This document shows positions 7,677 to 48,279 of a stretch of 64,000 bases of DNA, piece after piece. The notes under the pieces are model-generated. The model was not told the DNA's origin, made no database searches, and saw only the letters and a list, made by a program, of their open reading frames with translations. Where the stretch lies: positions 3,906,001-3,970,000 of the forward strand of contig CATNEN010000039.1 of the NCBI GenBank assembly GCA_950097015.1, read 5' to 3'. Within the stretch, counting starts at the first letter, position 1, and the number at the start of each line of letters is the position of its first letter. The DNA is from Macrostomum hystrix (Eukaryota > Animalia > Platyhelminthes). The position numbers and the translations under genes were made by a program.

Positions 7677-7709
<33 letters not shown>

Positions 7710-7742
7710 AGGTTGAAGAAACAATTTTCGCGATGCCGCCAT
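5240..7742 (-). CDS. Na+/H+ exchanger (SLC9A/NHE family), 5' exons 7742-7335, 6392-6134 and 5475-5240; remaining exons not found in the window
   Basis: Signal peptide; LPTSCLQILLG, FFHFLLPIIIINAG, FGALISAVDPVAVL and LFGESVLNDAVSV are hallmark NHE motifs; GT-AG junctions keep the frame. Confidence 0.92.
5545..6095 (+). mobile_element. Decayed copy of the hAT MITE at 30325-30839 with an internal 16-bp minisatellite, in NHE intron 2
   Basis: Shares CCGCATT(A/G)ACTGT at the left end, GGAGCTTCGAG(G/T)GCCGCATCTGGCC at the right end and a GGAGAGATGAGACAG array; TIRs eroded. Confidence 0.65.
6425..7285. repeat. 29-bp minisatellite (TAGCTAGTTGATCAGAGGATCTGGGATTC)n filling NHE intron 1
   Basis: Direct periodicity. 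Confidence 0.95.
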
Positions 7743-8894
7743 ATTGGCTTGTTAGCCTTGTCGCGCCAGGCAATGGAGCAAAGCTAGCGAAGCAACGCAA
7801 AGCAATGCTGCAAAACAATGCGAACTAGATTGAAGCAGCAGACAGAATAAGCTAGTTTTCCTGCACGAATTCTCTATCTTATGCGCTAGCTAAACTGCTG
7901 AACTTTCGTAAAACTTGGTAAGGAAAGAACAACAGCGATCTGCGGCAACGGAAAGGCAAGCGAGAATCGGGAGGGGGCTCAGCCAAGAGAGTTTGAGAAG
8001 CAAAGATGCGCCAATTGTTTTTCCTTAGTTGCGCAGAGCAGGGAGAGAGAGAAGAACTGTAGTGTCGACTTCAGGGCAATGGGTTTGTGCGAACTCTGCG
8101 CGGACAGGCCCAAGTAGGTGAAGAAAGCTTGACTTGGCTGCTTTCGCTATTATAGAGGAGGAGGAGGAGAAAAATGGGCGCGCAAAACTAACTAGACAGC
8201 TAAGACGTGCACTGCAGCCTGGCCAATCAGAGAGAGCCAGCCCCCGTCCCCATCCAGGGCGACAGCCGCATCATTACACTGGGCCTGCGCACACGCGAAA
8301 TTCATGCAGTGGAGCTAGCAGGTAAATTATAGAACACTTTGCCCTTCAACTATTCAATAGAACTATCACAGCCAACAAAATATTGTGGGTACTTGAGTAC
8401 TTTTGCCTGCACAGGTTTAGACCGCAAGATTACATAGCTTTCTATTCTCATCTGCACTAACAGCAGCAACTAAAACCCCACCCTGTTTGGTTAATTTCAG
8501 ACAATGATAGTGTCATTGTATAGACTTTCAGCTGCCCAAGCCCCAGCCGCACTTGTCAGTTGGAGGACTTCAAGTGAGTTTATTGAGCACAAAATAATTT
8601 CAATTAACAGCTGATTGGCCATTGTTAAAGAAATAAATCACGTTGATTTAACATTTTCACTATATAGACAATGTATTTTTAATTATCATACTACAAAAAA
8701 GATGTGCTCACATAATAATTAGAAGAAAAAATATAACTTTTTATAAATTAAAGTAGGTTTTAATCAATAAGTTATTAGTTTTCCTAAGAAAAACACACAA
8801 CGTTATCATATGGCAATAGCCTTGCATAATCCATTGAAGAAAGAAAACTAAACTAAAAAATGAAGGTTTTCAAACATGTCAAAATTTTTCAATC

Positions 8895-11790: not shown

Positions 11791-14358
11791 AGTGCCAGCA
11801 ACGAAAATCGATGTGAATTGCTGTGAATCAAATTTCCGAACTAATTATCAAATTATTAATCCAGAAAGCAACAGTTCTTTGAACAATTCAAACTACTCTA
11901 CTTGAAGTAGGAGCTAGACTATTATTGGATATAAAGACTGACAAATCGTATTTTGTTATTGAAATAAAAGTCCAGGTAAAAACAAAGTTGTGATCAAGTT
12001 GTTACATGCTGTGACACACATAGTTAGTATGATAGGGCCATTGCAAACAGAGGCATATAAATGCACATAATGATCAGAAACAGGCCCAGGTTGATTGCTG
12101 TGATGCTATGGTTGAAATTTTTGAAAAGGGGAGGTCAACAAGCACCTGTGAGATAAGACTGAAGTATATACAAGCGTAGTTATACTTACAATCCCAAAAG
12201 CAAGCAACAGTCAGTTGAGTGGACCCCAATTGGCATCCGTTTGCCCTCAAAGCTGGTCTAGTACCAAAAATATCACCAAAATATAATACATTGTTTCTAC
12301 ATTTGTGGCTTGTAACTTTCCAGAAGGCTATAGTCCTAAAGGTAACTTAATGGACAGTTGGCTTACATATAAACAAATGTATCCCCTACCCTAGGTTTTA
12401 TAGCTAAGCCATCAAAAAGACATCAAATGACTCACATTGGCCTGTTACTTTACCAGAACCATACCCCAAGTTGCAACCAATCCAAAAGTACATAAAAACT
12501 ATTGGTTAAATAGCAAAACTGCATCCAATATCTAGCTACATCTAGCCATATTCTATAGTCTAGACATAGCCCCATACAACTTATTATTTTTTATTTGCTT
12601 CAGCTAAGCTTTAAAAAAAATCTACAACTCACTTTTTGTAAGGCCTACATTGTAGTAAAGAAAGAAAATGAGAAAAAATAAATGAAAGTAAATTAACATT
12701 TTATATAATGTCTTAAATCTTAAACTTTAGTCTAAAGCCTTAAGTCTTAAATCTAAAAAAGTAGCCAAAAAGGCCTAGCTGACAATACTTGTTTAAAAGG
12801 AAATAAGCAATTAAGTTTCAGGCTAATAATAAGCCTGGTTTGTAGGCCACAGGCCAGTCTGTAGACAGTGTATACACATAGGCCTAAGAAACTAGATCCT
12901 AGTAGCTAGTAGTGTTGGTTACAGCTGAAATATTTATATTCTAAATTGTCATATGTAGATTACAAATTACAAATTACAAATCTGTCAACAGACAAGTTGA
13001 TTTATTTGAAGGCAATGAAATTCATGAGCAGATGAATTGCAGATGATTGCATTTTATTTGATGGCCATAATAAAGAGTCTTTTAAATAAGTATAATCTTG
13101 TTTGACTCATGTGCTGCAGACTAAAGTGATGCAGATATAATAAAAACATTTAAGCAATACAAACTTATGCATCACATACATTTTATTGATATGATCATGT
13201 ATTTTGTGATGACCAAAGTGGTAGCAGATTACTTTGTTTCAATTGTTTGTGACGCAGACAAGTTAGTATGAAGTTTTTAAGACTGGAAAATAGCAGAAAA
13301 AATTGTAGCAAACAAAAAAGCTGAAAACATGTAACTTTATTTAAGTTACTAGCATTGGAAAGTCCAAAAAATACAGAAAGACTTGAGGTGGAGTCAAGCC
13401 AATCAGGGCAAACCAATTAGACATATTCTGTTCATGATAACTTTGGAACAAAGTAGCCTATTAAATTTGATATGACAAGTTTACCTAACTTAGAAAAATG
13501 TTTATGTACAGACTATGATGAGGCAATGTCAATGATGAGGCAATGATGAGACAATATATATAGTAAGATAAAGATCTTAGTTGGAGCCATAGTGCTATAT
13601 CTATCAATAAGTTAGAGAGTAGCTAGCTACTAGGAGAAGTAAAGATAGAGGTATAGGCTAATAAAATATTTGTCAGAAGATTTAGGCCCTAGCAAACTTT
13701 AAACTAAGCATAGTAACTGGACTGAAATAATTAATCATTTGAGGATCAAGCCAGTAAGGCCGCTCACCCACTGACCTTAGAAATACTTGTTTAGAAAGAA
13801 GCTAGTCATAGTTTAGGTTTCCCGCTCAAAATTATTAAAAATAAATAAAATAACTTTAAAACAAACGATATATTTCTTTGAATACAAAGGCGGTTGCCAA
13901 TGGCCAATGCTACTGCCATCCATGTCGATAAAATATAAATTTTAGAAAAAAAATAGCGAAGGTTTTGAATAACATAAACATGATTCAGATTAAAAAGACG
14001 AACAAACAGACTAACAAGAAAACCTGAAAAAACTGCATTTTTTTAAAAACAACATGACCGATTATTAACTAACTGTCTGCAAGTGAGGCAGGCCTTATCT
14101 GTGGCATTGTCCCGTTATAAAAAATTTGAATGCTTATAAAAACATAACAAAATAGTTTTGCTAATTTATCTAAATATCAATTAAATAATAAGAATATTAT
14201 TTTAAATTTATCATTTTATTTTCTTTAATTATTTTTAACCAGGCTTTGAAACCATGCAATCTGTTTTAAAAACTTTAGTTTTGTAGACATATGCGGTTTT
14301 AACTTGGACAACGAAATGCATTTTTAACTTGCGATTTGGTTAAGATTGTGCTTTCAAG

Positions 14359-29454: not shown

Positions 29455-30324
29455 TCTCTGTACTGGTTTTTGTGCTTGCTAAATGCTGCCACGCAAAGCT
29501 TATAAATATACGAGCGTAGAAGTAAGATCGCTACTAGAGATAAGTTTATTGTGTACATCTGGCTAAATTCACAAGCCGACTGTCGCTCGAATGATAACAC
29601 GCTTTACTAGGAGTTTAAAACTGTCTGACGGTATGCTGTGCGATAAGTGAATTGAAACAAGCAGCCAAATATAGTACCGTAGAGTGTCATTTGAGATATT
29701 CGGCGTACGTTAGAATAATGCAGCGAGTATTTATCAGCGATCCAGTTTGAAGTTCATTTAAACGAACAAGTAGTTTGTGTGCTATAAAAACAGTATGAAA
29801 AAAGTGCCACACCCTGACACATAATATTACACGTACTACCAATCTGATGAAATCCAAAGCAAAGAAAACTGTTTCGTTTACATCTCTGATACGACTACAA
29901 TGCATAAAAACGATCAGACCCGTGAATGGCTTGCTTTTATAGTCGGGATGCGTGATACAAGAATATCGTACGAGCTCCATGAGCGTGTATGTGTGTACAT
30001 GTGTGTGTGGCTTGACGAGCACTAATTCATGTTCTATGGTACCCAAGTATGTACCGTCTATGGTTCGAAGGTACCACGCCTCGCATTTGGATACGACGCG
30101 CACGACAAAGCTTATAGTTATTGGACCACAAAACGCTTATCAAAACAATATGGCTTTGGGGGAGAATTGTCTGTGGTCAAACCTCTAAAAACTAAAACTG
30201 AAAGCTGACTACAGTCTTTTGCAGCCTAGTTGACACGCTCTCCCAGATGTCTATGGCACAGAATGGTGCCAGGCCGGCAAGCAATAGCGTAGGCCATAAA
30301 AAATTAAACTGTCATAGTCTATGG

Positions 30325-30839
30325 CAGGGGTGGGCAAACTTATTTGCTGGCGGGCCAAAGAGAGAGCCTAAAAGATGACAGCGGGCCGCATTGACTGTAT
30401 AAATATGAGATAGGGGAGAGATGAGACACGGGAGAGATGAGACACAGGAAAGATGGCACACGAGAGAGATGAGACACAGGAGAGATAAGACAGGGAAGAT
30501 ATTAGACACGGGAGAGATTAGACACGGGAGAGATTAGACAGGGAAGAGATTAGACACGGGAGAAATTAGACACGGGAGAGATTAGACACGGGAGAGATTA
30601 GACACGGGAGAGACTAGACACGGGAGAAATTAGACACGGGAGAGACTAGACACGGGAGAGATTAGATACGAGAGCGATGAGACACGGGAGAGATTAGACA
30701 CGGGAGAGATAAGACAGGGAAGAGATTAGATACGAGAGCGATGAAACAGGACACTGTAGATGTCAGAAGGGGCAACGGGCCGGATTTGGGAGCTTCGAGT
30801 GCCGCATCTGGCCCGCGGGCCGGAGTTTGCCCACCCCTG
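30325..30839. mobile_element. Non-autonomous hAT (Charlie-like) MITE with an internal 16-bp minisatellite
   Basis: Perfect 16-bp TIR CAGGGGTGGGCAAACT/AGTTTGCCCACCCCTG; perfect 8-bp TSD GTCTATGG at 30317-30324 and 30840-30847. Confidence 0.93.
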
Positions 30840-32256
30840 GTCTATGGTGAAACCGGCTTTAAACGCATTTGCTGCCCCATTCAAAATATTTTTCATCATG
30901 CATATAAAATCCGATCGCTTGTTTACCGGCCGTTTGATGGGTTTCTTCTAAGTTTGGAATCCGTTGTCTATGGTTGAAACACTACATTCCTTGCCCATTA
31001 AACCATTTAATGAGCTACTCAGGGTACTAATGATTACTAATGAAGTACTAATGAAGGATCTAATGATTTAATCGGATTTCATATAATATAATCGCAATTT
31101 ACTTCATCTTTGCCCGCCTTATTTCAGGCCGGCTTGGTTGGCCTTGGCCGAGCTCTCTCGCCCTCTTCTCCCCGTCCCTGCTTTGTGTGCCCTGAGCCGC
31201 CACCTGATTGGCTAGACGCGGGCGTTGTTTGTTAACCCTGATCCTAGACCTGCGTGGCTTTGCCCCTCCCGCCAATCAGCTCTACGTAGCTTTGCCCGTC
31301 AACCCGGCCAGCCCGTACAACCCTACCCCATGCGTGCTGTGGGCTTGAATTTGGCACACCGCCTCCCCTGTCTGCTCCACTCCCCCAGGTAGCTGCCCTG
31401 TTTTCAGTGATTATCCGCAGCTTACTTAATGGTACTGTAGGCTCGTAAATTGGTACTTCGTCTATACATGCTGCATTTATAGCCTTCAAGGCATCATAGA
31501 GAATAAAAGTTAATAATAATAATAATTTATCACACCTGTCCCAACCGGGCCAGATGTACAGCCGACAGCATGCGAATTGCTATTCGCACGAACTCACTTA
31601 GAGAAATTTAATTCAGCGTACGAACATGGGACAAAAGGCACTGCGTCGAAATCTGATTGCATATTTGGAGACAATTACTTAATCGATACAGAACCTAAGC
31701 TGTATGCCATAAGGGCGAGCTTCCAAGGGGGGGGAGTCTTGCCCAGTCTGGTTAGCCAGATCGATAAGGGAACTTCCATGGTGAAATACCGAAGGTAAGA
31801 CAAGTTGTTTGTGTGACAGAAAAGCAGTACGATTAAATCTACTATGTTCTTGTGCGTGTTGTACTGATTTGCTATCTGCTTGGTATTGAAAGTATACCTG
31901 CAGATAAATACGAGTATAAGACGCAGATCAACGAGTTAAAGTTGGATTGGAAAGACCTTCATGTAGGGTGACTGGTCTTCAAAACGGGGGTGGGTGGGAC
32001 ACTGAACTCGATACGTTTGTCTGCGCCGATTCAGTAGAGAATGAAATTTTCTCCTCTGCTAGCTACAGTTGTCAACTGCGAAACCGGGTGCTGCTACAAA
32101 AGTCACTGAAGCGACTATTTCGTTATCAGCAGGCGCAGAAAAAAGAAAAAACGAACTTGGCGATACGTAAGCAAGCCAAGGCACAGGCCGATGCAGAAGT
32201 GCAAAAGCAGTCAAAGAGCCAGTGGCAGTGTGATAGCATTACAAGCAGCACACGCG

Positions 32257-35200
32257 ATGCTCTCTGAAGCAGTTTCTACCGAGCGAGCAGTCAGCAGTCT
32301 CAAAGAGGTGTACCAGCAAGCCTGCTCACAGGTCGAATCAGAGGTGGCCGAGCCTGAAAAGCACCAGCTGCAGCTCCTGGGCCATCGGCTGTGCGACAGT
32401 GTGGACGATGCCAAGATCAGCCGCATCCGTCGACTCTACGCTGAGTTCTCAGCCGACCCTCGGAATGCCGGACTGCAGGGCGGCTGCGGCGAGATGTGGA
32501 CCTTCAGAGATGGCGGCGACCTGGACATCAGCTTCCCCATGCAGCTGGCGCCGAGAACTCACGAGTCGCAGGTGAAGCTGCGAGATCGGGGAGAGAACGG
32601 AGAGTTCCAACTGGCTATTGAACCGAACGGGAACGAGTCTGAGCTGTGGTACCTGCGAACATTGTGGAGTTGGCGGAAGTCCTACAGCTTGCAGCTTGAT
32701 ATTGTTTATGCCTCCTTGCTTGTCTTCTTCCACATCCTGTTCATCAGCAATGGTGACTGGAAGGTTTGTTGCAGTACTCGTATAAATATTTTTTTATTCA
32801 TTATTCAATAGCAAATCAATATGAACTAAAGTACGAGTATTAAAATCACCCTCGACAGAGATGGATAACGTCAGCCATAGTGATTCCTAATGATTCAGTG
32901 ATCAGCGCCATGTTATCCAGAATGAAAACATCAGCAATCAGCATACCACGATGGCTAGATGGCATTCCAGCCTTGCCAATCCTCAGAGGAATTTCATTTT
33001 TTACGAGAATTCTATCGCCAGTTACATTGCTAAGCAGAATACCAGGGGTGCGAAATCTGCTCGTGAAGCTCAATCCATCGGAGAGTCACGGCCCGGCTGA
33101 TACGGACGATGACATTCGACAGCGCTACGGCAGTATCAAAACAAAGGGCGTGGACATTGTGAGCTTCGTGCCGGCTCCGCCCGATGTCGATCAGCTGCTG
33201 GTCGAGTGGCGGTGCCGACACCAGCGCAGATTCGTCAACTCCCAGCACTTCGACCGACTCGTGCCAGCATGCGGAGATCTCGGAATGGTCATGTTCGACA
33301 CAATGCACCAGCTGTGGCGACTGTCGCTCACCGAGTTCGAGTGCCAGTGGATCAGGAACCTCCCCAAGGAGCAGGGTCTCGTGCTCAGCGTCGCGAAGCT
33401 GCTCGCCAAGGACTCTCAGCTCACCGATGGTCACCCAGTCACCAGCTACCCGATAAAGATGTCATTCTTCTGGTTCGTGTACTTTAGTGCTGACAGCGAC
33501 TGGACTCCACAGAGGGTGTGCTTGAATGCGCTGAAGGTGCTTCGCTTTCTGGAGATTTGCTTCGACAAGAAGAGCTTGCCGAACTACTTCTACCTTGACG
33601 AGAATGTTCTGTGGAAGTACAAGAAGGACGCGACGATTCTGGCTAAAATCCCAGCGACAACAAAGGCAGTGGGTCATTTTCTGAAAAATAATTTGCTCGA
33701 AGAAAAACAGGTGCAAAATAAAATCCACGGAATTGAGAAGCTGTTGGATGTCTTCTGCTCGGGAAAGTTGGAGGCATGGAATCCGTGGAGGACTGGCAAC
33801 TTCTTGGCCACACGAATATACAATTTGGAGTCGTCTCAGGAGACTCGAGTCGGCTTGGCGGCAGTGACGCACGTCTGCCTGATCGTTCTGGTTCAAGTGC
33901 TTATTGTGCCTGTAGCATTGGTGACAAGTAAAGATGCACACTTTAAGCTTCTTGCAAAACTAGGCCTTCTAGCCATTCTAGAATCGCCTATAATTTTGAT
34001 TTCGTTTGCGCTGCTAACTCTGATCCACAGACATTCTCCCTACATTGTTCTGAGTCTTGTAGAAATTCGGAAGCGCCCGCATAACACCAAGTATAAACCG
34101 TATTGTTTTTCTAAGGACGAAATGAGAGAAATATTTTTACAGGTACAAAAAGACTTGGACATTTTATTGACGAAAATTAAGGAAGAAAATAATGCCGCTT
34201 TTGCCAACCAAGCTACCTGCGCTTTAGCTAAACTCAGTGGACTGTTCTCAGCTGAGATAGAGGAAGTGAGCAGACTCAGTGACCATTCGTCTCTGATCTG
34301 TTTTAACCTGCCGGGTGAGAGCCAAATAGCTTCTCCCGTAGATGTGAAAGCATTCAGAGTGCCTGGCAGCGACCTGGTCAGCAGATTGCTCCGCATTCAC
34401 GGAGCGTGGTTCGATGTCGCCTTCACTTTCACTTGCATGGCAGCTGAAGCTATTGTCCTTCATGCGCTAGCTTGTGCTGCAGCACTATCCCAGCGCTATC
34501 ATCATTCCGTTGTCACTTGTTCTGCCTTTTCTGGCAGTGAACTATGACTATTACCGGCGAGACGATTTACGAATAAATATTCTGCGTAGCTTGGGCTCAG
34601 CGCTCTCGAAGCTGCCGATCCGACTGCCGACCCGAGTGGCGAGACTCGCCCACTGCCTGCTGGCTGGGGAAGCCCGCCTGAGAGTTCGCACCGGTCAGCC
34701 AGACGAAACTCTCGTCCTGCTCGATGCGAGGCGGCTCACCTGGAGGCTCTGCACCGACCTGCGTGAGAGACGCGCCCTCGCCTGCATGAGCGGGGGACAC
34801 AAACTGAGCTACTCCGCTGTGCTCAGTCTGGCGAGGAGGCTCGGCGTCACTCGCTCCAACTTTGAGCCGCTCCGAGTGGCATTTCACTGGACAGCGAGCC
34901 TCATGCCCGATCCGCAGCACTGGACTGTGCAAAATTCTCTCCGCAATGCACTGCTGGTGCTCGAGCTGTGCCGCAGGTGCCACCGACGAGCCAGTCTGCC
35001 GAACTTCTTCCATCCTGCAGAGAATGTGGCCCTCGTCCGACCGGAGACATTCAACGGTGTGCCAAATTGTCACGTGATTCTCGCGCACCTGCTGCAGGCA
35101 GACTCATCTGCTGCCCACCGAGCTGAGCTGGTGTCTCGGCTGCGGTGCGAGCTCGAAGCAGTCGCAGAGGAGGAGGAGGTCGCGAACGCGGCTGCGTGGG

Positions 35201-35328
35201 GCGTCGGGATGCTGGCCGCTCGAGTCATCATGCTGGCCGGTGACTTGGCCTTCCATGCTGTCTTCGCTACTGCAATATTCGCATGTGTGACTCCGTTGAT
35301 TCATATGATTAATGCGCCAAGAAGCTGA
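32257..35328 (+). CDS. cGAS-like (Mab-21/cGLR) nucleotidyltransferase with hydrophobic segments, copy A; exons 32257 (or 32191)-32763 and 32859-35328; +1 frameshift near 34470
   Basis: NTase motif LQGGCGE-x8-DLDISF; third acidic residue in GVDIVSF; Mab-21 C-lobe WRLSLTEFE..SYPIKMSFFW..W..LPNYFYLDENVL; second lobe WRLCTDLRE..LPNFFHPAENV. Confidence 0.8.
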
Positions 35329-35717
35329 AATGAGTTCAGGGTCGACTAGGCCTTGCATGTTTTTTCATGTACCAAAACGTTTCCCCGATTTCCTTGCACT
35401 TTCTTGGAAGTGAGTGCCAGACCTCATGTCTAGTAGTTTCAGTTTGCCAACGGCAAGCAAATCTGGAGTGACTTTGGAGTTTACTGATTCCTTTCGTGTT
35501 CGTAGCATTCGTGGCGTTCCCCCGTCTCATTTTTCATAGTATTTGGTCTTCAACAAAGCCACTTCTGTCTGCAATCGCAGCGTGTTTGCATACCTGCTCT
35601 TCTCCCTGGATACAAAGCCTCACACCAATGTCTTGGTTTCCTCAGCGTGGGTCTATTGTCTTGCGACAGACTTCACATTTTTAGGCCATCGGCAGTTAGT
35701 TCTTTAACCAAAACAAA

Positions 35718-37684
35718 ATGATTTGCAAAGCTGGATTATACTTTGCGATCTGCATTGTATTTTACATGATTGGTAAGATTAAGATGGCGTATAATTGATT
35801 ATTGATTGCTTGAAAGCATTCAGATTCATGAGAACCGAATTCAAATTGATTCCTACTGTATATTTGGATGTTTTGCTCATATGAGTAATAAAGCAATGTA
35901 AAACATCTGCCACTTCAGCCAGATTACTAAAAGTGGCAATATTATTTTTGTGCCTGACAAATGTTTTCCTTTGCACAAATTGCTCAAAGTTCGCTGCTGC
36001 GGTCCCGCTGCAGCCACCAGCGGCGTCAGCATTCAGTTACATCGCAGTGGCCCAGTTGAGGTGAACGAGACAGCGATCAGCTGCCTGCTGAATGAGACCG
36101 GACTGCGATCAAGCATCAGGTGTGCAGCCAGGTGTCGCGCTATCAAAACCTGCTCAGCCATCAGTGTGAACAGCATCAGCGGCCTCTGCCAGCTGCTGCT
36201 GCTTGGTGGCTTCGGCTCATCCTGCTGGAGTCGCGTTCGCCGGCTTTTCGGAGCCACGCCGCGGGATCTGGTTTGGAAGGCCACCGATTTCGACTTGCGA
36301 CTGTTCGACTCCATGCCGCTGCCTGAGCACTTTGAAGCTTCGTTCATTAGTAAGGCCTAGAAATTACTTAGACATCACTCAGACATCTGGTGACAAACTT
36401 TCGGGAATTGCAAAGAGATCAGTTTTCTATTTTGCGCACAGATGTCAGCACTGGAAGACTCGGCGCAATCCAATTCTTCACGGTGCCTCGGACCGCTTGC
36501 TACTTCATTGAAGCCCGAGGAGCGAGCGGAGGTGCTTGCGGAATTCAGAGCTCGAAATCTTACCCAGGCGGCAAAGGGGCCAGAATGAATGGCAGTTTCT
36601 TGTTGGACATCGCCGCGGAGTTGTCGGTTGTTGTTGGCCAGGCTGGCACTCAGGCCTCACTAATGGATAATGACGCAGGCGGCGGTGGCGGTGGAGGCAC
36701 TTTTGTGTACCAGACAGCGGACAGGGTTCTACTGTTGGCGGCCGGTGGAGGCGGCGGCGGCAGCGACCATGCTGTTGGTAGGAGAGTTGGTTAATAATAA
36801 TAATAATTGCAGGAGGGCTGCGGTCAATGGCACAACATTTGGTGACTCGAGACCCGCAGCCAGAGAGGAGGCATTTCTGCCCACTCCGTTCACTCCTGAG
36901 CACACTCGCACACGGATACCGTACGCAGGCAGACGCTCACACATCTGCCCTGACTTTCTCATCGTCAGGCGGTGTACACTTCACAGCCCCCAAGACCTCC
37001 GCGGCTGCTCCTCAAATGAATGTGGCTCACCGCGGAATCGAGCTCAGAGGCGCCAGAGGCAATCACGTTATCCGCTCTGCCACCGAACACCTGATCGCAC
37101 CATTCCTTGGTAACTATCTAGAACTCAAAGGTGCAGGTAGAAGCAGGACGCAAATTTGCAAAATTTGTGATTTATCTGAACGAGTGAAGAACCAACTTCC
37201 AGGTACCGATGGTCAGAGCGGCACAAGCGGCTCGGACACCGTGTCTCGGACATTCATCAACAACGCCCTGCTGGACCACGGAGGTGCTAATGGCCGGCCG
37301 GGATTCACCAACGTCTCGGGCACGCCGGCCAATTACAAGCATGGAGGTCCCGGCGCCGGCTGGCTCGGCAAGGCCCCGATGGCACGAAGGGACGCCAGGT
37401 GCGGAGAGCAGGGCGGCGGCATCGACGACGTCTGGGCAGGCGGTCTCGCTGGCACCGGCGGCGGCGACGGTGGCTTTGGTGGTGGTGGTGGCGCCTCTGA
37501 TCAAGAGGGTCCCGGAGGCGGCGGCGGCGGCTACAGCGGCGGTGCCTCTGGCGTCAGAGAGGACACAGCAGGAGGCGGCGGCGGATCCTACTGCTCCGGT
37601 CGCGGCTGCAGAGGAGCCATTGGTGGCAGCAGCGGGCAGCATGGCTCCGTGACGATCACTCTGACTGGAAGGAATTGTAGCTGA
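35718..37684 (+). CDS. Secreted PAN/Apple + ALK/LTK-type glycine-rich domain protein; exons 35718-35772, 35990-36349, 36442-36777 and 37203-37684
   Basis: Signal peptide MICKAGLYFAICIVFYMIV; CAARC..C..C PAN pattern; [57 protein letters not shown] glycine-rich signature; all three introns are phase 1 and in frame. Confidence 0.82.
36792..37087 (-). mobile_element. tRNA-derived SINE in intron 3 of the glycine-rich gene
   Basis: Reverse complement of the 3286 element, including the (TAA)n tail and GGAATCGAGCTCAG. Confidence 0.82.
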
Positions 37685-38347
37685 CTGGCCACTGAAAAAG
37701 CTGCCTGACAGTCGATTCTCATCCATACCTAACATTTCGAACGCGAATTACAAGCGAATCAAGTTATACGAATTATACGAAATTCTAGCTATGTTCGTAG
37801 AATTTTGCGAGCTAAGTTTTGGATTTTAAGACTTGGCTTTGGGTGTTTACTGCTCAGAGCTGCCGAATTCTTTTATACGCCTTATTCTCTAGTTTGATGC
37901 CATGCATCGCATTAACTCACGATGCTTTGCAATGTGTTCCTACTTTGGCTTTGAGATGGACGCTAACCATAGGCCATATAATTTATTTAATTTTCCGCAT
38001 CGCCCGGTTGTCTGCGAAAGTTCGCGTTAATTGCACTATTGCGTCAATTCGTTCTTCCATTATCTTTCTATAACAAAGTTATTTCATAGTCGTTCATCCT
38101 TTCGTAATGCTCGCTTTGAGAAAGATTCTACGTACGCGTCATGCAAACAGGGTATGCAAAAGTGATGAAAGGACGGTCTAGCTGTCTCAAACCAAACAAT
38201 AGAAGACCTGAGAGTTATTGGGTGCTTTTTTTGGTCCTAGCAGGGGTGGAGACAGGTCTTTAGAAGGCTTTGAGACCTAAATAAATGCTCTGAGAGCCTT
38301 CGGACACCGAGCGAATAGTTAGTATTTTATTTCCGCCACTGCTAGCC

Positions 38348-39757
38348 ATGGCTCACTTGGCCTACAAAGTGATCTTCTTCAAGGTGGTTTTCTACCTGGT
38401 GGAATGCATGAAAAACTACCAGCTGCTGCCGCAGGACTTCGCTGACTCGCTCTCAAGCCACCTGTCCGCGACTCTAGCCAGTTTTCTATTCATGTTGCTC
38501 ATGACCAGAATGTTCTTCTTCGGTATCATCGAGTGCCTCACGCCGCCGGAATGGCCGGAGCCCTGGGAGAAGGCAACGGAGGCCATCTGTTTCACCGACG
38601 GCACCTACGCCCTGCCGCACGGCGCTGACAACGTCACCGACGGCAGCGAGTGGCAGCACAAAATTCACCTGGGTGAGACATCAGTGCGCCCACAGTCCAA
38701 GCCTGACCACGACAGCGTCTCTTTCACTGCAGTTCCCTCTGAGCGTTTGTCTCAGTCTCAGTCTCAGTCTCAGTCTCAGTTTCTTTCTCAGTCTCAGTCA
38801 GTCTCTGTCTCTATGTCAGCCCTCTGTCTCTGTCCGTCTTCTTGTCCAGATGCCCCAAGTACAAGCGAATCATCCCACCCACCCCGGTATCCAGGCTACT
38901 ACTACTGGATTCCTTTCATCTTCATCGGCCAGGCGATCATTCTGAAGGCGCCAGATTTCTTCTGGCACTTCCTCTGCGACCTGCACCCGAAGAGGCCGAT
39001 AGAGACATTGAGGGCCTTCGCCTGCCTCATCGGAAGCCAGGAGCTGATGCAACACTCCGACAATGCCCACGTTGAGCCGGAAAATCTGGCGAAATGCACC
39101 GAGCAGCAGCGGTGGACAGACTGGCTGGCCATCCACCTGAGAAGCAACAACCGGTTGATCAACTTCGACAACTGGCACCTGTTCGCGCTGTACATGCTCT
39201 TCAAGCTGCTCCGGCTAGCAGCCCTGCTGGGCTCGCTTTTTTACCTGCAGGCCTCGTTCGGATTGGAGTCGCCGCTGTTTGGCCTTCAAATGGCCATTAA
39301 TCGTCTGCAAGGTGTGCCATGGGAGCAAGCAGACCTGTTTCCCAGGTGGGCCTACTGCGACGTGCACACCAGAATGCTGGGCAGCTGGAACACCCGAGTG
39401 ATGCAGTGCGCGCTGCCCTTGAACCTGCTGCTCGAGCAGCTACTGCTGTTCTTCTGGTTCTGGCTGACCATCTGCACCGCCTGCCTTCTGCTCTCCGCTG
39501 CCGCCTGGGGCGTCGCCATGTTACCCGCCAGACGGCGACAGTTCGGCCTCGCCTTTCTCGCCGTCGGCGGCTCCGCCAGCTTAGTCAAGACTGTGCGCGA
39601 CCGAAGGCGACTTATGAGCAATGAGGACCTGGTTGAAATACTCACGGCGGTTGACCGGGCCTTCATGCTGCGCCTTGTGGAGGAGAGGCTGGGACTGGCT
39701 CCCGCTTACTTGGCCATGGAAAAAATCGTCTACGATGTGATGCATCCTGTTGTGTGA
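38348..39757 (+). CDS. Innexin; exons 38348-38672 and 38895-39757
   Basis: IECLTP..EAICF, GYYYWIPFIFIGQA..P..FW, FPRWAYCD and QCALPLNLLLEQLLLFFWFW are innexin motifs. Confidence 0.92.
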   Translation: MAHLAYKVIFFKVVFYLVECMKNYQLLPQDFADSLSSHLSATLASFLFMLLMTRMFFFGIIECLTPPEWPEPWEKATEAICFTDGTYALPHGADNVTDGSEWQHKIHLGETSVRPQSKPDHDSVSFTAVPSERLSQSQSQSQSQFLSQSQSVSVSMSALCLCPSSCPDAPSTSESSHPPRYPGYYYWIPFIFIGQAIILKAPDFFWHFLCDLHPKRPIETLRAFACLIGSQELMQHSDNAHVEPENLAKCTEQQRWTDWLAIHLRSNNRLINFDNWHLFALYMLFKLLRLAALLGSLFYLQASFGLESPLFGLQMAINRLQGVPWEQADLFPRWAYCDVHTRMLGSWNTRVMQCALPLNLLLEQLLLFFWFWLTICTACLLLSAAAWGVAMLPARRRQFGLAFLAVGGSASLVKTVRDRRRLMSNEDLVEILTAVDRAFMLRLVEERLGLAPAYLAMEKIVYDVMHPVV

Positions 39758-39765
39758 CTTCAGCC

Positions 39766-39796
<31 letters not shown>

Positions 39797-40369
39797 ATAT
39801 TACCCTGGTCTTATTAGAAAACTGTCTTTAACTGCCTAGCTTCCTAATTGACAGCCTTCAAACCGAACGCTGAATGCAAAATATAGAGATTCGTGTTTGT
39901 ACGAGTATTATGCTAGCTACATGAGCAGAGGCCAAAAGTTTTTTTCTTCTCAAACCAAAGAAAGAGACTGGAAGTGAGCTGTTAAGTGCTGAAAGAATAA
40001 TTAATTGTGCAGCCTGAGTAATTCTGCTCGACCTTGCTCGAGTAATCTTCAAAGAACTCACAATCTATTGAAATAAGAGTTTGATTTGACACAGATATTT
40101 TAAGGATTAGAGACCTTATTATCTTTTATGCAGTGAATCATGTATCATAAAATTTATATTTTTGCGTCGCGTACAACAACATAAAGTCAAACTAGTGGGT
40201 GGTGGAGCTCTGCAAGATGGACCTGATTGGCTGAGGGAGCGCAAGGGGTAGAGAGAGAAAAAGGAGACAAAAATGGCTTAGCCAATCAACTGCCCCCCCA
40301 GAGCCGTGCAAAATGAAAAACCAAATCGGAAGTGAAACCCCAGAAAACTAGTCGGTGACTTCGCAAGAT

Positions 40370-43300
40370 CTACGCAAGATCTGCTGTCCAAAGAAAAACC
40401 ATCACCCGATTCAACAAAAAAATTAACATCAGATATGGAAAATCACACCACAGAAAGAAGGCCAAGTCACCGGCCAGCATGATGACTCGAGCGGCCAGCA
40501 TCCCGACGCCCCACGCAGCCGCGTTCGCGACCTCCTCCTCCTCTGCGACTGCTTCGAGCTCGCACCGCAGCCGAGACACCAGCTCAGCTCGGTGGGCAGC
40601 AGATGAGTCTGCCTGCAGCAGGTGCGCGAGAATCACGTGACACTTTGGCACACCGTTGAATGTCTCCGGTCGGACGAGGGCCACATTCTCTGCAGGATGG
40701 AAGAAGTTCGGCAGACTGGCTCGTCGGTGGCACCTGCGGCACAGCTCGAGCACCAGCAGTGCATTGCGGAGAGAATTTTGCACAGTCCAGTGCTGCGGAT
40801 CGGGCATGAGGCTCGCTGTCCAGTGAAATGCCACTCGGAGCGGCTCAAAGTTGGAGCGAGTGACGCCGAGCCTCCTCGCCAGACTGAGCACAGCGGAGTA
40901 GCTCAGTTTGTGTCCCCCGCTCATGCAGGCGAGGGCGCGTCTCTCACGCAGGTCGGTGCAGAGCCTCCAGGTGAGCCGCCTCGCATCGAGCAGGACGAGA
41001 GTTTCGTCTGGCTGACCGACGCGAACTCTCAGGCGGGCTTCCCCAGCCAGCAGGCAGTGGGCGAGTCTCGCCACTCGGGTCGGCAGTCGGATCGGCAGCT
41101 TCGAGAGCGTAGTGCAGACAGTCCTGAGCGTCGCAGCTCTGATGCCTGCCAGGCGGTAAATGTTGCCATTCAGAACCACTGCCGGTGTTACAAATGTTAC
41201 TGCGATAACCACAACATTTAAGTCGTCATTTATAAGCTGCGAGTCAATGGCTCTGCAAATTAAAAGTACAGACGTCATCAGGCACGCAGCAATAAGTGCA
41301 TCGTAGAAGGCACCCCAGAGCAGCATGAGGTGCTCAGTTAGAGTTTTTCGTGACGCGATATCAATGCTGACTCGAAATGAATTGTTTGAGAAATCGCCGA
41401 CGGATGCTTTCGGCCAATCAAAGGCGATGTCAGCCGATGCGCAATTATTGACGTCCTGCACGCAGTCGCCTCTCTCAATTCCGAGCTCATTGAAGGTGTT
41501 GCTCAATTCTTCGATAGAGTGTTCGTGCTCTGAAATTATTTCTCTAACGTCGCTCCGGACTTCCTGAAAAATTTCGCTTACGCAATCAACCAGTGGAGTC
41601 GAACGATGCTGGGAGTCGTAGAGACTCTTCAGCTTCTCCACAGAGCTCAGCAGGACATTGGGGACTTCTGTACAGAAAAAGCGCGCGAACAGAGGCAAAA
41701 ATGCCGTTGCTGAACTTTTGAGAAACATTGCGTACATGTAGCTTATGCTTGTGTCCCGACTCGTTGAAGCTATTCGCCAGATTATGTACAACAACTCCGC
41801 CACTGAAATTAGAGCTATGTGAACCACAGAAGCTGCCCACGCCGCGCGATTCCATTCGGCAGTTTCCGCAGACAGAAGGCGAGCCGATAAGAAGCTTGTT
41901 GCCGGAAGGTAATTCCATGCAGACAGCTTACCACTGCAGAACTTCGCCAGGAGAACTTCCATTCCTGCTATGTTTCCAATGACATTGCCGACCGAGACAT
42001 CATTTCTATCAATCAGACTCGTCAGCGAGATTGACGTTTTCGGAATTTTAACCAGAATCGTCGCGTCCTTCTTGTACTTCCACAGAACATTCTCGTCAAG
42101 GTAGAAGTAGTTCGGCAAGCTCTTCTTCTCGAAGCAAATCTCCAGAAAGCGAAGCACCTTCAGCGCATTCAAGCACACCCTCTGCGGAGTCCAGTCGCTG
42201 TCAGCACTAAAGTACACGAACCAGAAAAATGACATCTTGATCGGGTAGCTGGTGACTGGGTGACCATCGGTGAGCTGAGAGTCCTTGGCGAGCAGCTTCG
42301 CGACGCTGAGCACGAGACCCTGCTCCTTGGGGAGGTTCCTGATCCACTGGCACTCGAACTCGGTGAGCGACAGTCGCCACAGCTGGTGCATTGTGTCGAA
42401 CATGACCATTCCGAGATCTCCGCATGCTGGCACGAGTCGGTCGAAGTGCTGGGAGTTGACGAATCTGCTCTGGTGTCGGCACCGCCACTCGACCAGCAGC
42501 TGCTCGACATCGGGCGGAGCCGGCACGAAGGTCACAATGTCCACGCCTCGAATGCGCACTTTTTCTTTTAAATTTATCGCTACGAATTCGTCAGTGTCAG
42601 CTGGTCCATGTCTGGTCGAAGGGACAGTTTGCGTTAACATGTTGGCACTTGTGAATGACATTTTATTTCTTATTCTTGTTAAAAGAGTTGCTACCCTTCT
42701 TGTGAGACAATTGTCGTGCGCGTTTACATACACGCTTGCAGCAATGACTAGCGCAGCCGAAACTCCTCGCTGAAATCGTAATTGACAAGAGAATTTTATG
42801 CATGACAGTTACTTGTTGTTTCGCCTTTTTGATGAACCAGAAAGAAGACGTGCAGGTAGCTACTTACCTTCCAATCAGCGAAATGTCTCCAGAGAAAGTA
42901 TTCCACCGCCGCATGGACGCAGCACAACATAATATTGAACACTATCGCAAGAAAATACTTTTGAATCCGCAGCCGTTTCCAGGTGGCCCGCAGGTACCAC
43001 AGCTCAGACTCGTTCCCGTTCGGTTCAATAGCCAGTTGGAACTCTCCGTTCTCTCCCCGATCTCGCAGCTTCACCTGCGACTCGTGAGTTCTCGGCGCCA
43101 GCTGCATGGGGAAGCTGATGTCCAGGTCGCCGCCATCTCTGAAGGTCCACATCTCGCCGCAGCCGCCCTGCAGTCCGGCATTCCGAGGGTCGGCTGAGAA
43201 CTCAGCGTAGAGTCGACGGATGCGGCTGATCTTGGCATCGTCCACACTGTCGCACAGCCGATGGCCCAGGAGCTGCAGCTGGTGCTTTTCAGGCTCGGCC

Positions 43301-43389
43301 ACCTCTGATTCGACCTGTGAGCAGGCTTGCTGGTACACCTCTTTGAGACTGCTGACTGCTCGCTCGGTAGAAACTGCTTCAGAGAGCAT
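40370..43389 (-). CDS. cGAS-like (Mab-21/cGLR) protein with hydrophobic segments, copy B, intact (~973 aa); exons 43389-42868 and 42769-40370
   Basis: Same motifs as copy A in one continuous frame after a phase-0 intron at DWK; a further upstream exon is possible. Confidence 0.83.
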
Positions 43390-45660
43390 CGCGTGTGCAT
43401 GGCCTAAATGGGGCTACTCATCCGATTGGTATTAATTCTGCTTAATAAACTGCGGGCGCTTTTTATGTAAACTCAAACTTGAAAATAATTGAAAGAAAGC
43501 TTTATCAGTTTTTCCAGGAGCATCATAAAACTTCGAGCTGGCAGTTTGTTAAGATTTATTCAATTCAACACGCTTTTAACTCAGTTGAGATCTGAGCTCT
43601 GATAAGATCGACCGGCCCTGCGCCGAACTTCAAAAGATTTCGGCCATTTCTAGCGCTAAAAAATAATCCAGCGCTGTGACGTAAATTTATTTGCATCTTT
43701 CCATCATATTCCATGTGTATAGTGCCTCGATGCACGCAGAATCTGTTTGGAATTCGATCCGCCCGGAAGCTGTTAAATGTACAATGTATTGCATCAGCAT
43801 CGATTGTTACAGACTGATATGCCCTCTACTGCATGTTTTCTTATATTTTACATGTAAATGAGTTGAGTAATCTGATTTCGTGAAAGAGAAACTATATTAC
43901 TTAAGCTTACCGAAACTAAAAATTACTATGAGCGTACTAACTAGAAATAATTTAACGGATGGATATATTAATGAAAGAATGAGTTAGGTAAAAACCTGAA
44001 ATTTGAATTATAAAAGTTTCATTCATATAATTTTCCGCTTAAAAACTTAACAGGCAATGTTGCTCAAAAACTACTCTAAAAATAGTGAAACGACGATAGC
44101 ATGCAACAATGCCTTTTAGTGGACCATATTTCTAGTAATTAGCATTGGCACTCGTTATTTACTCGTGACGTGTTATTCATTTTCGCGTTATTTGCACGGA
44201 ACTGTGCATTAAGTGTGCATTATGCTTCTGTATGTTAGTTAGAATCATCTAAGCAACTTGTAGTTTATTTCTAATCATCGTCACGTCACTAGATCTCTAC
44301 GCGTCTGCCTTATAATTCTAGGCCTATGGCTATTTCTACTATGTAGTCTTTTAGAGATCTGGTTATGACGGCATGCAAATAACGAGTAACATTAGCATTC
44401 GGTATCAGCAGCATTGATGTCATACCAATGCGAAAGATAAAATTCGAATACTATTAAGAGTTATATTATGAATCTTGCAACTGCTAAATCAGTTTGTTAC
44501 GAAGCCTAATAGAACTTATGGAATATATATTTGTTTAAATAAAATGTTGCGGCACATTAAATATTTAATTTGTCGGTCAGGTGGTCATTATTATTTAAAA
44601 TGGTTATCGTGTGCTGCTGTGGACCTGCTTGAGAGCCTGCTGCTTGAGAACCAGCCTGCTTGAGACTGTTCCGAGTGTAATCGTTCGTATTTTGCATTCA
44701 GGATTTTTTTGTTTTCCTCTAGTTATTTTAGGCTTTACTTTGGGGTATTCTTGCTCACAAATTTTGTGTACAAATGTTACTTTTGACTTGTATGAAGTCT
44801 TCTAATCGCAATTGAAAGTATATAATAGACTTGAAGTTCAAAAGTCTCGATATGTATTTAGTTCTTACGTATAAAACAAGCGCCATATTATTTTTTTACA
44901 TTTTTTGTTTTGAATTGTACTTTTTACATCCCTAACATCAAGAAGAAACTTCCGTTTTCATATAATGGTTTACTCGTTGTCTATCTAATCTCGCTCGCTA
45001 TCAAATTGTCTAATTACTAGCTATTTATTAGATTTTTTTGAAATGTTGGCTAGCTTTAGTATAAATTTATTAGAAATAATGTTTTGTACAACCATTTTTA
45101 TCGTACTTTTAACAGTAACAGTTATGACACAAGCTATCAAGAGTTCTATCAATATTAATGAGTGTTTTAGATTTTTTCTCACTTTGCTATGTACACAAAT
45201 TAAATATTTATTTTCATGTAATCAGTTCGATTTGTAATGGTAAAAGCTGTGCCAAAGTTTGTTTAACTGTTGTTAAATATTAGCTAAATTCCTAGGGATT
45301 ATATTTAAAAAATGTAACTAGCTTAGTGAAGGTGAGTTTAGATAATTTATACGAGTACATAGACATAAAATAGAATATTTTCAGAAAGAATTTTGAAAGA
45401 TTAGCAAGTGTTTGCTATACCCTAGTTTTAAATTGTCCTAAATAAATAAATTATAATAGCCATTATTTTATCAACAAAGATTTCATATTTTATATTGAAT
45501 AATTCATTAATCTTTCGTTTGCAGCCAACCACATTGGCAGCGAACTAAGGCCTAAAATCTGTTATCAGCACCCACCCCATCCCAGATCCCAATTGTTCCC
45601 CCAAACTCCCTTCCCCTGTTCCCTTTATTCCCTGTCATTCCTGCTTTCTGTCTGTCTAGC

Positions 45661-48279
45661 ATGCAACGCCTCAGTGCGGCCAGTCTGTATGACTCAGACC
45701 TGGGCATCGGCCTAGGCACACCGATGGACACGGCTTCCGTCTGCTCCTCTCACACCTCCGACTCCGGCGTCAGTGTCGGCCTTGGCGGTGCCGGCACGGG
45801 CCAGATCCCCGGCCTGCGCCGAATGCAGTTCCCCAGGCCTGTGCGCGTCAGCCAAGCGCCGCCACTTCCTCCACCACCGCCGCCGTCATCATCGTCGGCA
45901 TTGTTGTCTGCGCCAACAAGTCAAGCAGCTGTAGCGGGACCGGCTCGGCCGAGGACGCTGCAGCAGTTGCAGCCGCAGCAACAGCAGCAGCAGCATCAGG
46001 AGCGTCACTTTCAAAGGCCGAATCCCACTCCGCCGTCACTATTTCGGCTACAGCAGCAGCAGCAAGCCCAACAAGCGCTACTGTCGCCCAGCTCCTCGTC
46101 GGTTCCCTCGCCTCAGTCTAGCGTTGCCTCAGGTAGATCGACGCCTCAGTACGCAACTCCTCAGCAGCAGCAGAGATTGTTGCTACTGCAGCAGAGGTCT
46201 CTGCCTCCGCCGCCCACGCAACAGCCGCCTCCGCCGCCTCCGCCTCCACCGGCCTACAGTGCCAGCCACACCCTCTTGACTTCTAGGACTCTGCCCGCGG
46301 CCCCCGCTGCTGCGACGGCTGCGTCGGCTTTGTCAGCCTTCGCTGGCGCGCACTCGTCATTGTCTAGATCATCTAGCAGCATAGGTCAGTGATTTCCGAA
46401 TGCTGAGTCTGGTTTCAGGTACTTTCGGAGGTGCTGAAATTAAAGATAATTAAAGTAGCAATCGTTTTTTATTAGAAATTTTTCGTATGAGATTCGGACA
46501 GTTTTCAGCCTAGAAACCGCTGGGTTTCATTTAGTACTTTAGGCGCTTTGAACTTACGCGCTCTATGTAAGAATAGTACAAAGTGCAAAACATACGCACG
46601 CACAGATCGTTCTGCATGCCAGCACTCAACAACGTTTTTTATATCTACAAGTTTATTTTCAAAATTGTAGTCCCAATATGATAGAATCTATATGCTTATA
46701 ACAGCCTGACCTTTCCCAAGTTTTGAGCTCTGTGCACTTTATCTAGCATGAAATATTTATGTTTTATCAGCAATTTTTTTATTTTTTTAGACTGCTTTGC
46801 TGTACCCCTTTGAATTCTGCAATTAATTCGTCACTTCACCTGCGTGCCTAAAATAATATTCTAATAATTAGTCAGGAATTCCAGAATAAACACCTGACAA
46901 CTGCAGGTCTTGGCCCCTACCCCCTCTATAGCCTCCTCTCTCTCTCCACTCGTTATTCACTGTGTTTCTCTCCTGGAATGCCAGTGCAATGGAATGCCGC
47001 GCCGAATGTTAAACCTTCTAAGTAATTTTTTCTTTAATTTAATAAAAGATGCCAAGAATGCACTTAAATTGAGTTGACGAAATTGACCACATCTGACTAG
47101 TCACTTTGCAAAGCTAGCTCGTTAAGCAGTGTCCCACGCATTGGAAAGACACTGGCGCTATGCATTTACTCTCGTAGCTCTATAGCCTGTTTTAAGAAAA
47201 ATGTGGGCACTAACTTGATTCCAAGTTTAGCTGCTGTCTCTCGTTTTTTGTCTGAAGCGGAAACGGCTCGCGAGAACGAGGCTTCTGTGTGGGCTGCTGT
47301 AATAAAGCACCGGCGTGAATCTACCCCGTACTATTTGCCTGCTCTTCTCCTCGCCTCTACCCGCTTCTAAACCGTTTGCCCCTTCGAACCAAACCCAGTT
47401 CTTCTACCTCCTACCTTCTCCCGTTCTATCCCATTCTGCTACCCTATTCTACCCCGTTCTATCCACTTCTGCTATCATATTCTATCTTGTTCTATCCCAT
47501 TCTGCTACCCTATTCTACCCCGTTCTATCCCCTTCTGCTACCCTATTCTATCCCGTTCTATCCCATTCTGCTACCCTATTCTACCCCGTTCTATCCCCTT
47601 CTGCTACCCTATTCTACCCCGTTCTATCCCCTTCTGCTACCCTTTTCTATCCCGTTCTATCCCATTCTGCTAACCTATTCTACCCCGTTCTATCCCCTTC
47701 TGACTACACTATTCTATCTTGTTCTATCCCCTTCTGCACACTATTCTATCCCGTTCTATCCCCTTCTACTACACTATTCTATCCCGTTCTATCCCCTTAT
47801 ACTACACTATTATATCCCGTTCTATCCCCTTCTGCTACCCTAATCTTTCCCGTTCTATCCCATTCTTCTACCTTCTTCTACCCCATTCTATTCCCATCTA
47901 CCCTATTCTACCCTCTTCTAATCCTTCCCTATTGTAATCCCAAATGCCCTGCCCCCAGTCCTCAGTCTTGTCTAATACACAGTTTTGCACCTTTAATTTC
48001 AAGGCGCCTGCGGCAAATGCGCCAAAGCCATAGCGGCTCCTTCAGAGGCTTGCCACGCTCTTGGCAAAGTTTTTCACACCGTCTGCTTCACCTGCAACTG
48101 CTGCGGTCGAGAGCTAATCGGTTAGTTAACTTTTTCTTTCTGTTTTTCTAGTAGGCGGAAGTCCAGTTGGGTCACGTGATGCTTCGCCTCCAGGTTGTCA
48201 CTCGCTGTAGCGCAGAACATCGATTTTTTAGTACCAATTACCCTGGCCTTTTCAAGTTTTGGCCCGTTCCCGTCTCTCT

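Follow-up and report, generated by a model that had tools for sequence, protein, structure and literature searches.

A read-verified mosaic of near-identical and saturated coding segments in an inverted pair of Mab-21-like genes of the flatworm Macrostomum hystrix, probably shaped by gene conversion

Interlocus gene conversion is known from the inverted hsp70 gene pairs of Drosophila, the human gamma-globin genes, and the palindromes of the Y chromosome; textbook examples mostly have the entire coding region homogenised, with differences left to the flanks. GC-biased conversion occurs in multigene families such as the mammalian histone and Hsp70 genes, and conversion is also the means of cassette diversification in the lamprey VLR genes, in the pseudogene conversion of chicken immunoglobulin genes, and in the VSG genes of trypanosomes. 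Among adjacent paralogues of C. elegans, conversion has been documented for the inverted hsp16-48 modules, hsp70-7/hsp70-8, and col-12/col-13, in both inverted and direct arrangements (PMC3966223). Here, we describe two convergent (tail-to-tail) genes with Mab-21-type domains, copy A on the plus strand and copy B on the minus strand, within a 64,000-nucleotide stretch of the Macrostomum hystrix genome (the window; positions 3,906,001–3,970,000 of contig CATNEN010000039.1). The assembly is a canu build from the inbred line SR1 that went through several rounds of Illumina polishing (PMC10468722), and the genome searched comprised 220,453,370 bases in 42 contigs. Like the cases of interlocus conversion above, the pair consists of close duplicates in which near-identical tracts of a few hundred bases, synonymous sites included, lie beside old divergence; unlike them, it has three such tracts, mostly in one long exon, split by saturated yet homologous coding DNA and ending in step-like edges. 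An old inverted duplication, followed by repeated non-allelic gene conversion confined to three blocks, explains this mosaic with a probability that we put at roughly 80%. Coordinates are collected in Table 1.

A sequence-only reading of the window had singled out three near-identical blocks shared by the inverted copies (b1, b2, and b3), and its coordinates proved right to about 10 nt, with 0, 9, and 3 mismatches, respectively. An inverted-repeat search between the arms returned exactly these three pairs, and each block has exactly two copies genome-wide, both at this locus. In a gapped alignment of arm against arm, 50-nt windows are 96–100% identical inside the blocks and 26–56% identical elsewhere. 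The same division appears at synonymous sites, compared by the Nei-Gojobori method over 518 block codons and approximately 420 aligned variable codons: synonymous differences occupy 0 of 92.7 sites in b1 (synonymous divergence, dS, 0), 4 of 108.7 in b2 (dS 0.038; nonsynonymous divergence, dN, 0.013), and 0 of 173.7 in b3 (dS 0), where all three changes are nonsynonymous. For the intervening and terminal segments (v1a, v1b, v2, v2b, and v3), the proportion of differing synonymous sites (pS) is 0.71–0.80, compared with 0.78 for shuffled codons, and the corresponding nonsynonymous proportion (pN) is 0.48–0.72; synonymous sites of the variable parts are saturated. Sliding-window identity and dS describe a step and not a uniform dS, as expected from the earlier description of blocks identical even at synonymous sites and separated by barely alignable sequence. 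The b2 mismatches lie on average 85 nt from an edge, as compared with 126 expected, so that any clustering toward the edges is only marginal. Depending on which 500 bases are looked at, the pair appears either brand new or ancient.

The edges themselves are exact. Identity falls from 100% to about 30% inside 15 nt, in a single step and with no zone of intermediate divergence; just outside the six block edges (15–90 nt), in-register identity is 30–34%, compared with 25 ± 8% when variable DNA is paired at random. Of the earlier claim that abrupt boundaries lie inside exons, the abruptness stands and five of the six edges do fall in coding sequence, but the left edge of b1 is 9 nt upstream of the ATG. 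The claim that boundaries follow domain edges is borne out by a Kyte-Doolittle scan, in which they coincide with a switch from soluble to hydrophobic or linker sequence; all hydrophobic, membrane-like segments lie in the variable parts, and only the last of them starts inside b3. Steps without a decay zone imply that the edges are of long standing, and loss of homology may suffice to keep them in place. The blocks are also richer in GC, as had been noticed by eye (0.59–0.66 vs. 0.40–0.50 elsewhere), and the difference extends to third codon positions (GC3), at which the blocks reach 0.743 and 0.747 but the variable parts no more than 0.482 and 0.496. Since GC3 is 0.74 in the neighboring innexin gene, the block value is ordinary for a constrained gene in this genome.

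Read contigs, compared with window positions 32001–37900 (the copy A arm and part of the spacer), reproduce the mosaic. The DNA run X1, possibly the sample behind the assembly and hence independent of the assembler rather than of the animals, yielded contigs at 32001–32277, 32248–32657, 32628–33221, 33192–33454, 33613–34630, 34601–35253, and 35224–36818. These end exactly at block edges. Contigs of blocks reach depths of 164, 144, and 180, and those of unique sequence 83–86; such depths and breaks are what a de Bruijn graph would give for a true two-copy exact repeat. Runs X2, X4, and X9 are RNA, recognized as such by the splice joint 32761>32857, with X4 coming from a different study of 2020 and X9 being labeled as a different organism. 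One X4 contig of 1845 nt (33373–35217) passes from b2 through v2 into b3 with zero differences from the reference, a further X4 contig spans b1, v1, and b2, and altogether the copy A junctions b1-v1-b2 and b2-v2-b3 are both crossed by RNA contigs from two studies. The mosaic is therefore present in the DNA of the organism and is no assembly artefact.

The variable segments of the two copies occur in the same order and have nearly equal lengths. Between A and B, v2 retains 28% amino acid identity over 169 residues (E 9e-15), and v1b retains 47% over 34 residues around the motif HGPADTD (E 3e-7); the anchors FCSGKLxAWN, GA[WF][FY]D, and HGPADTD are found in both copies. As the variable parts are collinear homologs, the duplication is ancient and involved the whole gene, the blocks having been made identical much later. 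Each variable segment is single-copy genome-wide, and by protein search its sole relative is the counterpart in the other copy. One distant relative lies on contig C35 (30% identity, E 2e-4). No inverted repeat was found around it in any of three 10-kb stretches, though a partner straddling two stretches would escape this search.

These segments had been called hypervariable and possibly swapped as cassettes, and neither description holds. In a between-sample comparison of contigs from few samples, v2 shows 0 differences over 1006 nt, leaving aside an indel at 34472, and v1b, where copy A is most polymorphic, has seven polymorphic sites in 173 nt (32888–33060) among three samples. Five of these are nonsynonymous and two synonymous, a ratio that is roughly near neutral. 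The run labeled as a different organism (X9) carries a spliced, A-type v1 at approximately 98% identity, together with block 2 sequence at 100%; the A/B difference must therefore far predate the split from X9, and the variability between copies is old divergence. Separate genome searches with blocks and variable segments led only to this locus, with no donors and no shuffled combinations. The variable parts are thus old and stable. The locus resembles the systems of cassette diversification in that a single coding sequence switches back and forth between constant and variable stretches, but it differs from them in having no donor library and two copies only, in that the constant parts are the ones converted, and in that no hypervariability between individuals is seen. 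Three differences between X2 and the reference inside blocks (33509, 33566, and 35067), all of which carry the copy B letter, were considered as signs of ongoing conversion and set aside, as copy B transcripts may have been merged into these contigs.

Copy A is expressed and spliced, as evidenced by RNA contigs with the joint 32761>32857. The intron position after DWK, described earlier as shared along with the anchor motifs, is in phase 0 in both copies; it is confirmed by RNA in copy A, and copy B, which starts with the ATG at 43389, would be spliced at the same position judging from its sequence. An in-frame ATG upstream of copy A exon 1, at 32191, could add 22 codons. In the reference line, the frame of copy A exon 2 is broken at 34472 and meets a stop at 34545–34547, while the X2 allele is open through to the stop at 35326–35328, giving about 991 codons in all; dropping one T of the TT at 34472–34473 joins the frame that begins at 32859 with the frame that begins at 34474. 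Within X1, 0 of 85.6 depth lacks the additional T, and RNA contigs over copy A show no splice near 34474–34547, where the frame changes. The insertion is real in the reference line, X1, and X4, and it cuts the copy A product short of block 3 and its second Mab-21_C-like domain. Block 3 of copy A is consequently untranslated in the reference line, yet it is 99.5% identical to that of copy B.

The predicted products are multi-pass membrane proteins with a Mab-21/cGLR-like nucleotidyltransferase (NTase) region and two helical domains of the Mab-21_C type. Mab-21_C (PF20266) lies in block 2 and scores above the Pfam cut-off in both copies (E 7e-10 in B, where it covers residues 155–223 of exon 2, and 8.6e-07 in A); the block 2 product comprises the second half of the NTase domain together with Mab-21_C. 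Alignment of copy B exon 2 residues 50–236 by hhalign with a profile of Mab-21 relatives gave a probability of 97.7% (E 2e-12); HGPADTD coincides with the family-invariant G-P, and GVDIV with the D-x-V that is likewise invariant. This motif placement shows that the NTase core has its second half, along with the third catalytic acid. The Mab-21_C part recurs in diverged form in the block 3 product, an internal repeat that matches the block 2 product at 29% identity (E 1e-11) and Pfam at E 0.074. The sequence-only reading took the identical blocks to be catalytic and helical cores of an old duplicate under ongoing conversion; an old duplication with recent or ongoing conversion of soluble Mab-21 parts is retained here, but block 1 is not recognizable by sequence as a catalytic core. 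Exon 1, in block 1, does contain GGCGEMWTFRDGGDLDISF, a G-G...D-L-D string at the right distance that was spotted by eye, and hhalign places the exon on the DxD region of a relative with a probability of only 0.4%; searches of exon 1 against Pfam, PDB, and the ESM Atlas returned no usable match.

Relatives outside this genome are few. A homologous-protein search with the long exon of copy B found nothing at E ≤ 0.001, and a deep HMMER search among 1.8 billion representative proteins found seven relatives at E ≤ 0.001, all distant, which are coral and metagenome proteins with Mab-21 plus Mab-21_C. A PDB sequence search with exon 2 returned cGLR1 structures as its best match, weakly (E 0.14). 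An AlphaFold2 model of copy B exon 2, built from a nine-row alignment, was too poor for a fold search (mean predicted local distance difference test score 42; predicted template modeling score 0.26). The proteins are like cGLR and other Mab-21 NTases in Mab-21_C and in the second NTase half with its G-P and D-x-V; they differ in the hydrophobic segments that interrupt and follow the domains, in the second Mab-21_C-like domain, and in that the N-terminal NTase half escapes every sequence method tried. With Mab-21 domains interleaved with hydrophobic segments and almost no public relatives, they merit a biochemical look, the mosaic aside.

Mab-21_C has at least 90 matches genome-wide, mostly in single long open reading frames (ORFs) of 350–600 codons, with tandem arrays on contig C1 (e.g., 12.72–12.82 Mb and 4.29–4.33 Mb). 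In this free-living flatworm, cGLR-like genes have expanded greatly. The earlier comparison to a diversified immune receptor family is contradicted at this locus, as the subfamily has two members and the wider Mab-21 superfamily shares none of the blocks. All three close inverted Mab-21 pairs, the window pair included, have a near-identical tract adjoining diverged DNA: 652 bp at 98.8% beside DNA at about 77% in the pair at C1:23.58 Mb, and 1187 bp at 99.4% beside DNA at about 81% in the pair at C30:1.12 Mb, the adjoining DNA of the two pairs ranging from 77% to 83%. These two pairs are younger stages of the same mosaic. Their tracts likewise have a higher GC3 than the rest (0.68 vs. 0.53–0.56, and 0.71–0.72 vs. 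0.46–0.62), and a control comparison of matching halves in 20 unpaired family members gave a mean difference of −0.025 (SD 0.084, maximum +0.09). Four tandem Mab-21 pairs were also compared: patchiness is seen in two, another is 94% identical all along, and the fourth is old over its full length. Since tandem pairs are patchy too, inverted orientation is not essential, in agreement with the C. elegans pairs (PMC3966223). Dating, trees, and measures of selection in this Macrostomum expansion (at least 90 loci) would be misled unless conversion tracts were masked. Elsewhere in the family, two oppositely oriented Mab-21 genes on contig C9 (1136800–1143100 and 932400–938700), separated by approximately 200 kb, share 97.8% identity across 1398 bp. 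They reflect either conversion over a long range or a dispersed duplication of recent date.

Our preferred history for the window pair is conversion after an old duplication; we infer the recombination mechanism, its GC bias, and the reason for the stable boundaries. An ancestral gene would have been duplicated long ago in inverted, tail-to-tail orientation, after which non-allelic gene conversion between arms 5–10 kb apart would repeatedly have overwritten three stretches of one copy with those of its partner. Because the blocks differ in age (dS 0, 0.038, and 0), more than one conversion event is indicated, the latest being very recent for b1 and b3 and somewhat older for b2. Conversion would be limited to stretches that encode slowly evolving soluble domains and are still similar enough for pairing, while the hydrophobic and linker parts may have diverged beyond homologous pairing and so dropped out. 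The raised GC3 of the tracts would be expected from GC-biased repair of heteroduplex DNA, and the conversion is probably GC-biased. As in the GC-biased multigene families, converted stretches exceed unconverted parts in GC3 (0.74 vs. 0.49), with two further pairs behaving likewise; here, however, the comparison is of GC3 levels, and it is confounded with soluble as opposed to membrane sequence. The GC3 pattern fits the prediction of GC-biased conversion as a correlation across three pairs.

Several observations weigh against this history. Protein and deep HMMER searches found no pair of orthologs in less closely related Macrostomum species that could show the blocks grouping by species and the variable parts by copy. 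The GC3 contrast rests on three pairs and, at this locus, coincides with domain type. The absence of a decay zone at all six edges is sharper than simple neutral erosion suggests, and such sharpness may call for a hard heterology barrier, or for selection acting against tracts that spill over. Additionally, the read-based evidence for expression and splicing covers copy A alone. With these points included, we regard the finding as an unusually clean, read-verified case of a known process in a little-known Mab-21 pair, and not as a new system of immune diversification. It offers a natural example of soluble domains that conversion would preserve as identical over a very long period, next to membrane segments that drift to saturation within the same exon, and of an accompanying signature in GC3.

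Among other explanations, replication-based template switching between the inverted arms, through fork stalling or microhomology-mediated copying, would replace double-strand-break repair with a few discrete and recent copy-paste events. The exact steps at the edges, the differing ages of the blocks, and the short distance between inverted arms are all compatible with this, yet tandem pairs of the family show the same patchiness, which does not need inverted geometry, the raised GC3 of the tracts points to long-term heteroduplex repair rather than to single recent events, and no microhomology signature is evident at the block edges; we consider template switching unlikely. Less probable again is that selection maintains the constant/variable design, purging spill-over tracts because the proteins must differ in their membrane and linker parts, to suit different membranes, partners, or ligands, and favoring identical soluble domains. 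Stable edges at the soluble-to-hydrophobic switch, long open frames kept in both copies across saturated segments, and the survival of FCSGKLxAWN and of HGPADTD, the latter aligned with a family-invariant G-P, would all follow from such selection. Loss of homology explains the edges equally well, however; the inbred reference line carries a frameshift in copy A with no obvious consequence, the v1b polymorphism is near neutral, and function is predicted from sequence. We likewise regard as improbable, slightly more so than selection on the design, a role for the identical inverted blocks as functional recombination sites, at which crossing-over would flip the 5-kb spacer with its innexin and glycine-rich genes and re-assort membrane modules between promoters, with selection keeping the blocks identical and the modules distinct. 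If true, a pair of innate-immune enzymes would here form the animal analog of an invertible switch that swaps modules.

The remaining two explanations carry hardly any weight. The sequence-only reading had itself raised collapsed or mis-polished assembly as a source of the identical blocks, and repeated Illumina polishing (PMC10468722) with multi-mapping reads could have wiped out small differences between blocks that were already similar. Polishing is unable to turn 40%-identical DNA into 400–650 bp of identity, though, and both the X1 assembly, with one contig per block at about twice the flank depth and stopping at the edges, and the independent RNA of the 2020 study, which matches copy A without a difference across two junctions, speak against an artefact of either kind. 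It is just as implausible that the genes were duplicated recently and their variable segments then hypermutated or exchanged as cassettes, as in diversifying immune receptors: the size of the Mab-21 expansion and the raised nonsynonymous share of the v1b polymorphism might be taken in its favor, but v2 is invariant between samples, the variable segments are collinear homologs with saturated synonymous sites, and neither donors nor alternative cassettes occur anywhere in the genome.

Table 1. Positions of the inverted gene pair, its segments and surroundings, and the tracts of two further inverted Mab-21 pairs (window positions unless a contig is given)
Feature	Position	Strand	Basis
Block 1 (b1), 410 nt, 0 mismatches	A 32248..32657 / B 42989..43398	+ / -	Inverted-repeat search; separate 410-nt X1 contig at 2x depth
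Block 2 (b2), 506 nt, 9 mismatches (4 synonymous, 5 nonsynonymous)	A 33147..33652 / B 42042..42547	+ / -	Inverted-repeat search
Block 3 (b3), 653 nt, 3 mismatches (all nonsynonymous)	A 34601..35253 / B 40457..41109	+ / -	Inverted-repeat search; 653-nt contig at 2x depth
Variable segment v1: one hydrophobic helix, intron, linker with HGPADTD	A 32658..33146 / B 42548-42988	+ (A)	Alignment, hydrophobicity
Variable segment v2: 3-4 hydrophobic helices and helical linker	A 33653..34600 / B 41110-42041	+ (A)	Alignment, hydrophobicity
Variable C-terminal hydrophobic tail v3	A 35254..35328 / B 40370-40456	+ (A)	Alignment, hydrophobicity
Copy A coding exon 1, 169 codons, ending ...DWK	32257..32763	+	ORF; splice joint in RNA contigs X2, X4, X9; GT..AG refinement
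Copy A intron, 95 nt, GT..AG, phase 0	32764..32858	+	RNA contigs skip 32762-32856 (2-nt ambiguity); sequence
Copy A coding exon 2	32859..35328	+	ORFs 32880-34547 and 34474-35328; X4 contig 33373-35217 collinear, unspliced; frame arithmetic
Extra T (one of TT), polymorphic 1-nt frameshift, copy A	34472..34472	+	Present in reference, X1, X4; X2 without it
Copy B coding exon 1, 174 codons, ending ...DWK	42868..43389	-	ORF; translation; donor GTAAGT
Copy B putative intron, 98 nt, GTAAGT..TTTCAG, phase 0	42770..42867	-	Sequence only
Copy B coding exon 2, 799 codons and stop, uninterrupted ORF	40370..42769	-	ORF 40370-42733 extended to acceptor; Mab-21_C; hhalign
Spacer between arms, unique, 5 kb	35329..40369	.	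Pfam
ALK/LTK glycine-rich-domain gene in spacer	36390-37684	+	Pfam
Innexin gene in spacer	38348-39757	+	Pfam
Tract of inverted pair on C1	C1:23579000-23588999, stretch positions 2218-2869 / 7203-7854	inverted	
Tract of inverted pair on C30	C30:1117000-1132999, stretch positions 1623-2809 / 12061-13246	inverted	

Other features of the locus were recorded in passing. A scan of window positions 30000–46000 against Rfam matched no family. Inside the glycine-rich-domain gene of the spacer, at approximately 36790–37050, X1 depth rises to about 4 × 10^5, compared with about 85 for single-copy DNA, and hundreds of diverged contigs and loose ends accumulate; this is apparently a very high-copy interspersed repeat seated within the gene. 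Contigs that jump 36766>37517 reflect related glycine-rich genes. Two strand-asymmetric minisatellites of opposite skew border the inverted pair on either side, one purine-rich at 30414–30742 (a 16-nt unit repeated 20.6 times) and the other pyrimidine-rich at 47419–47910 (a 33-nt unit repeated 15 times). Within the innexin ORF (38348–39757), a GTCTCA hexanucleotide array at 38749–38811 is translated into consecutive SQ repeats, located in a loop or extracellular part of the protein.

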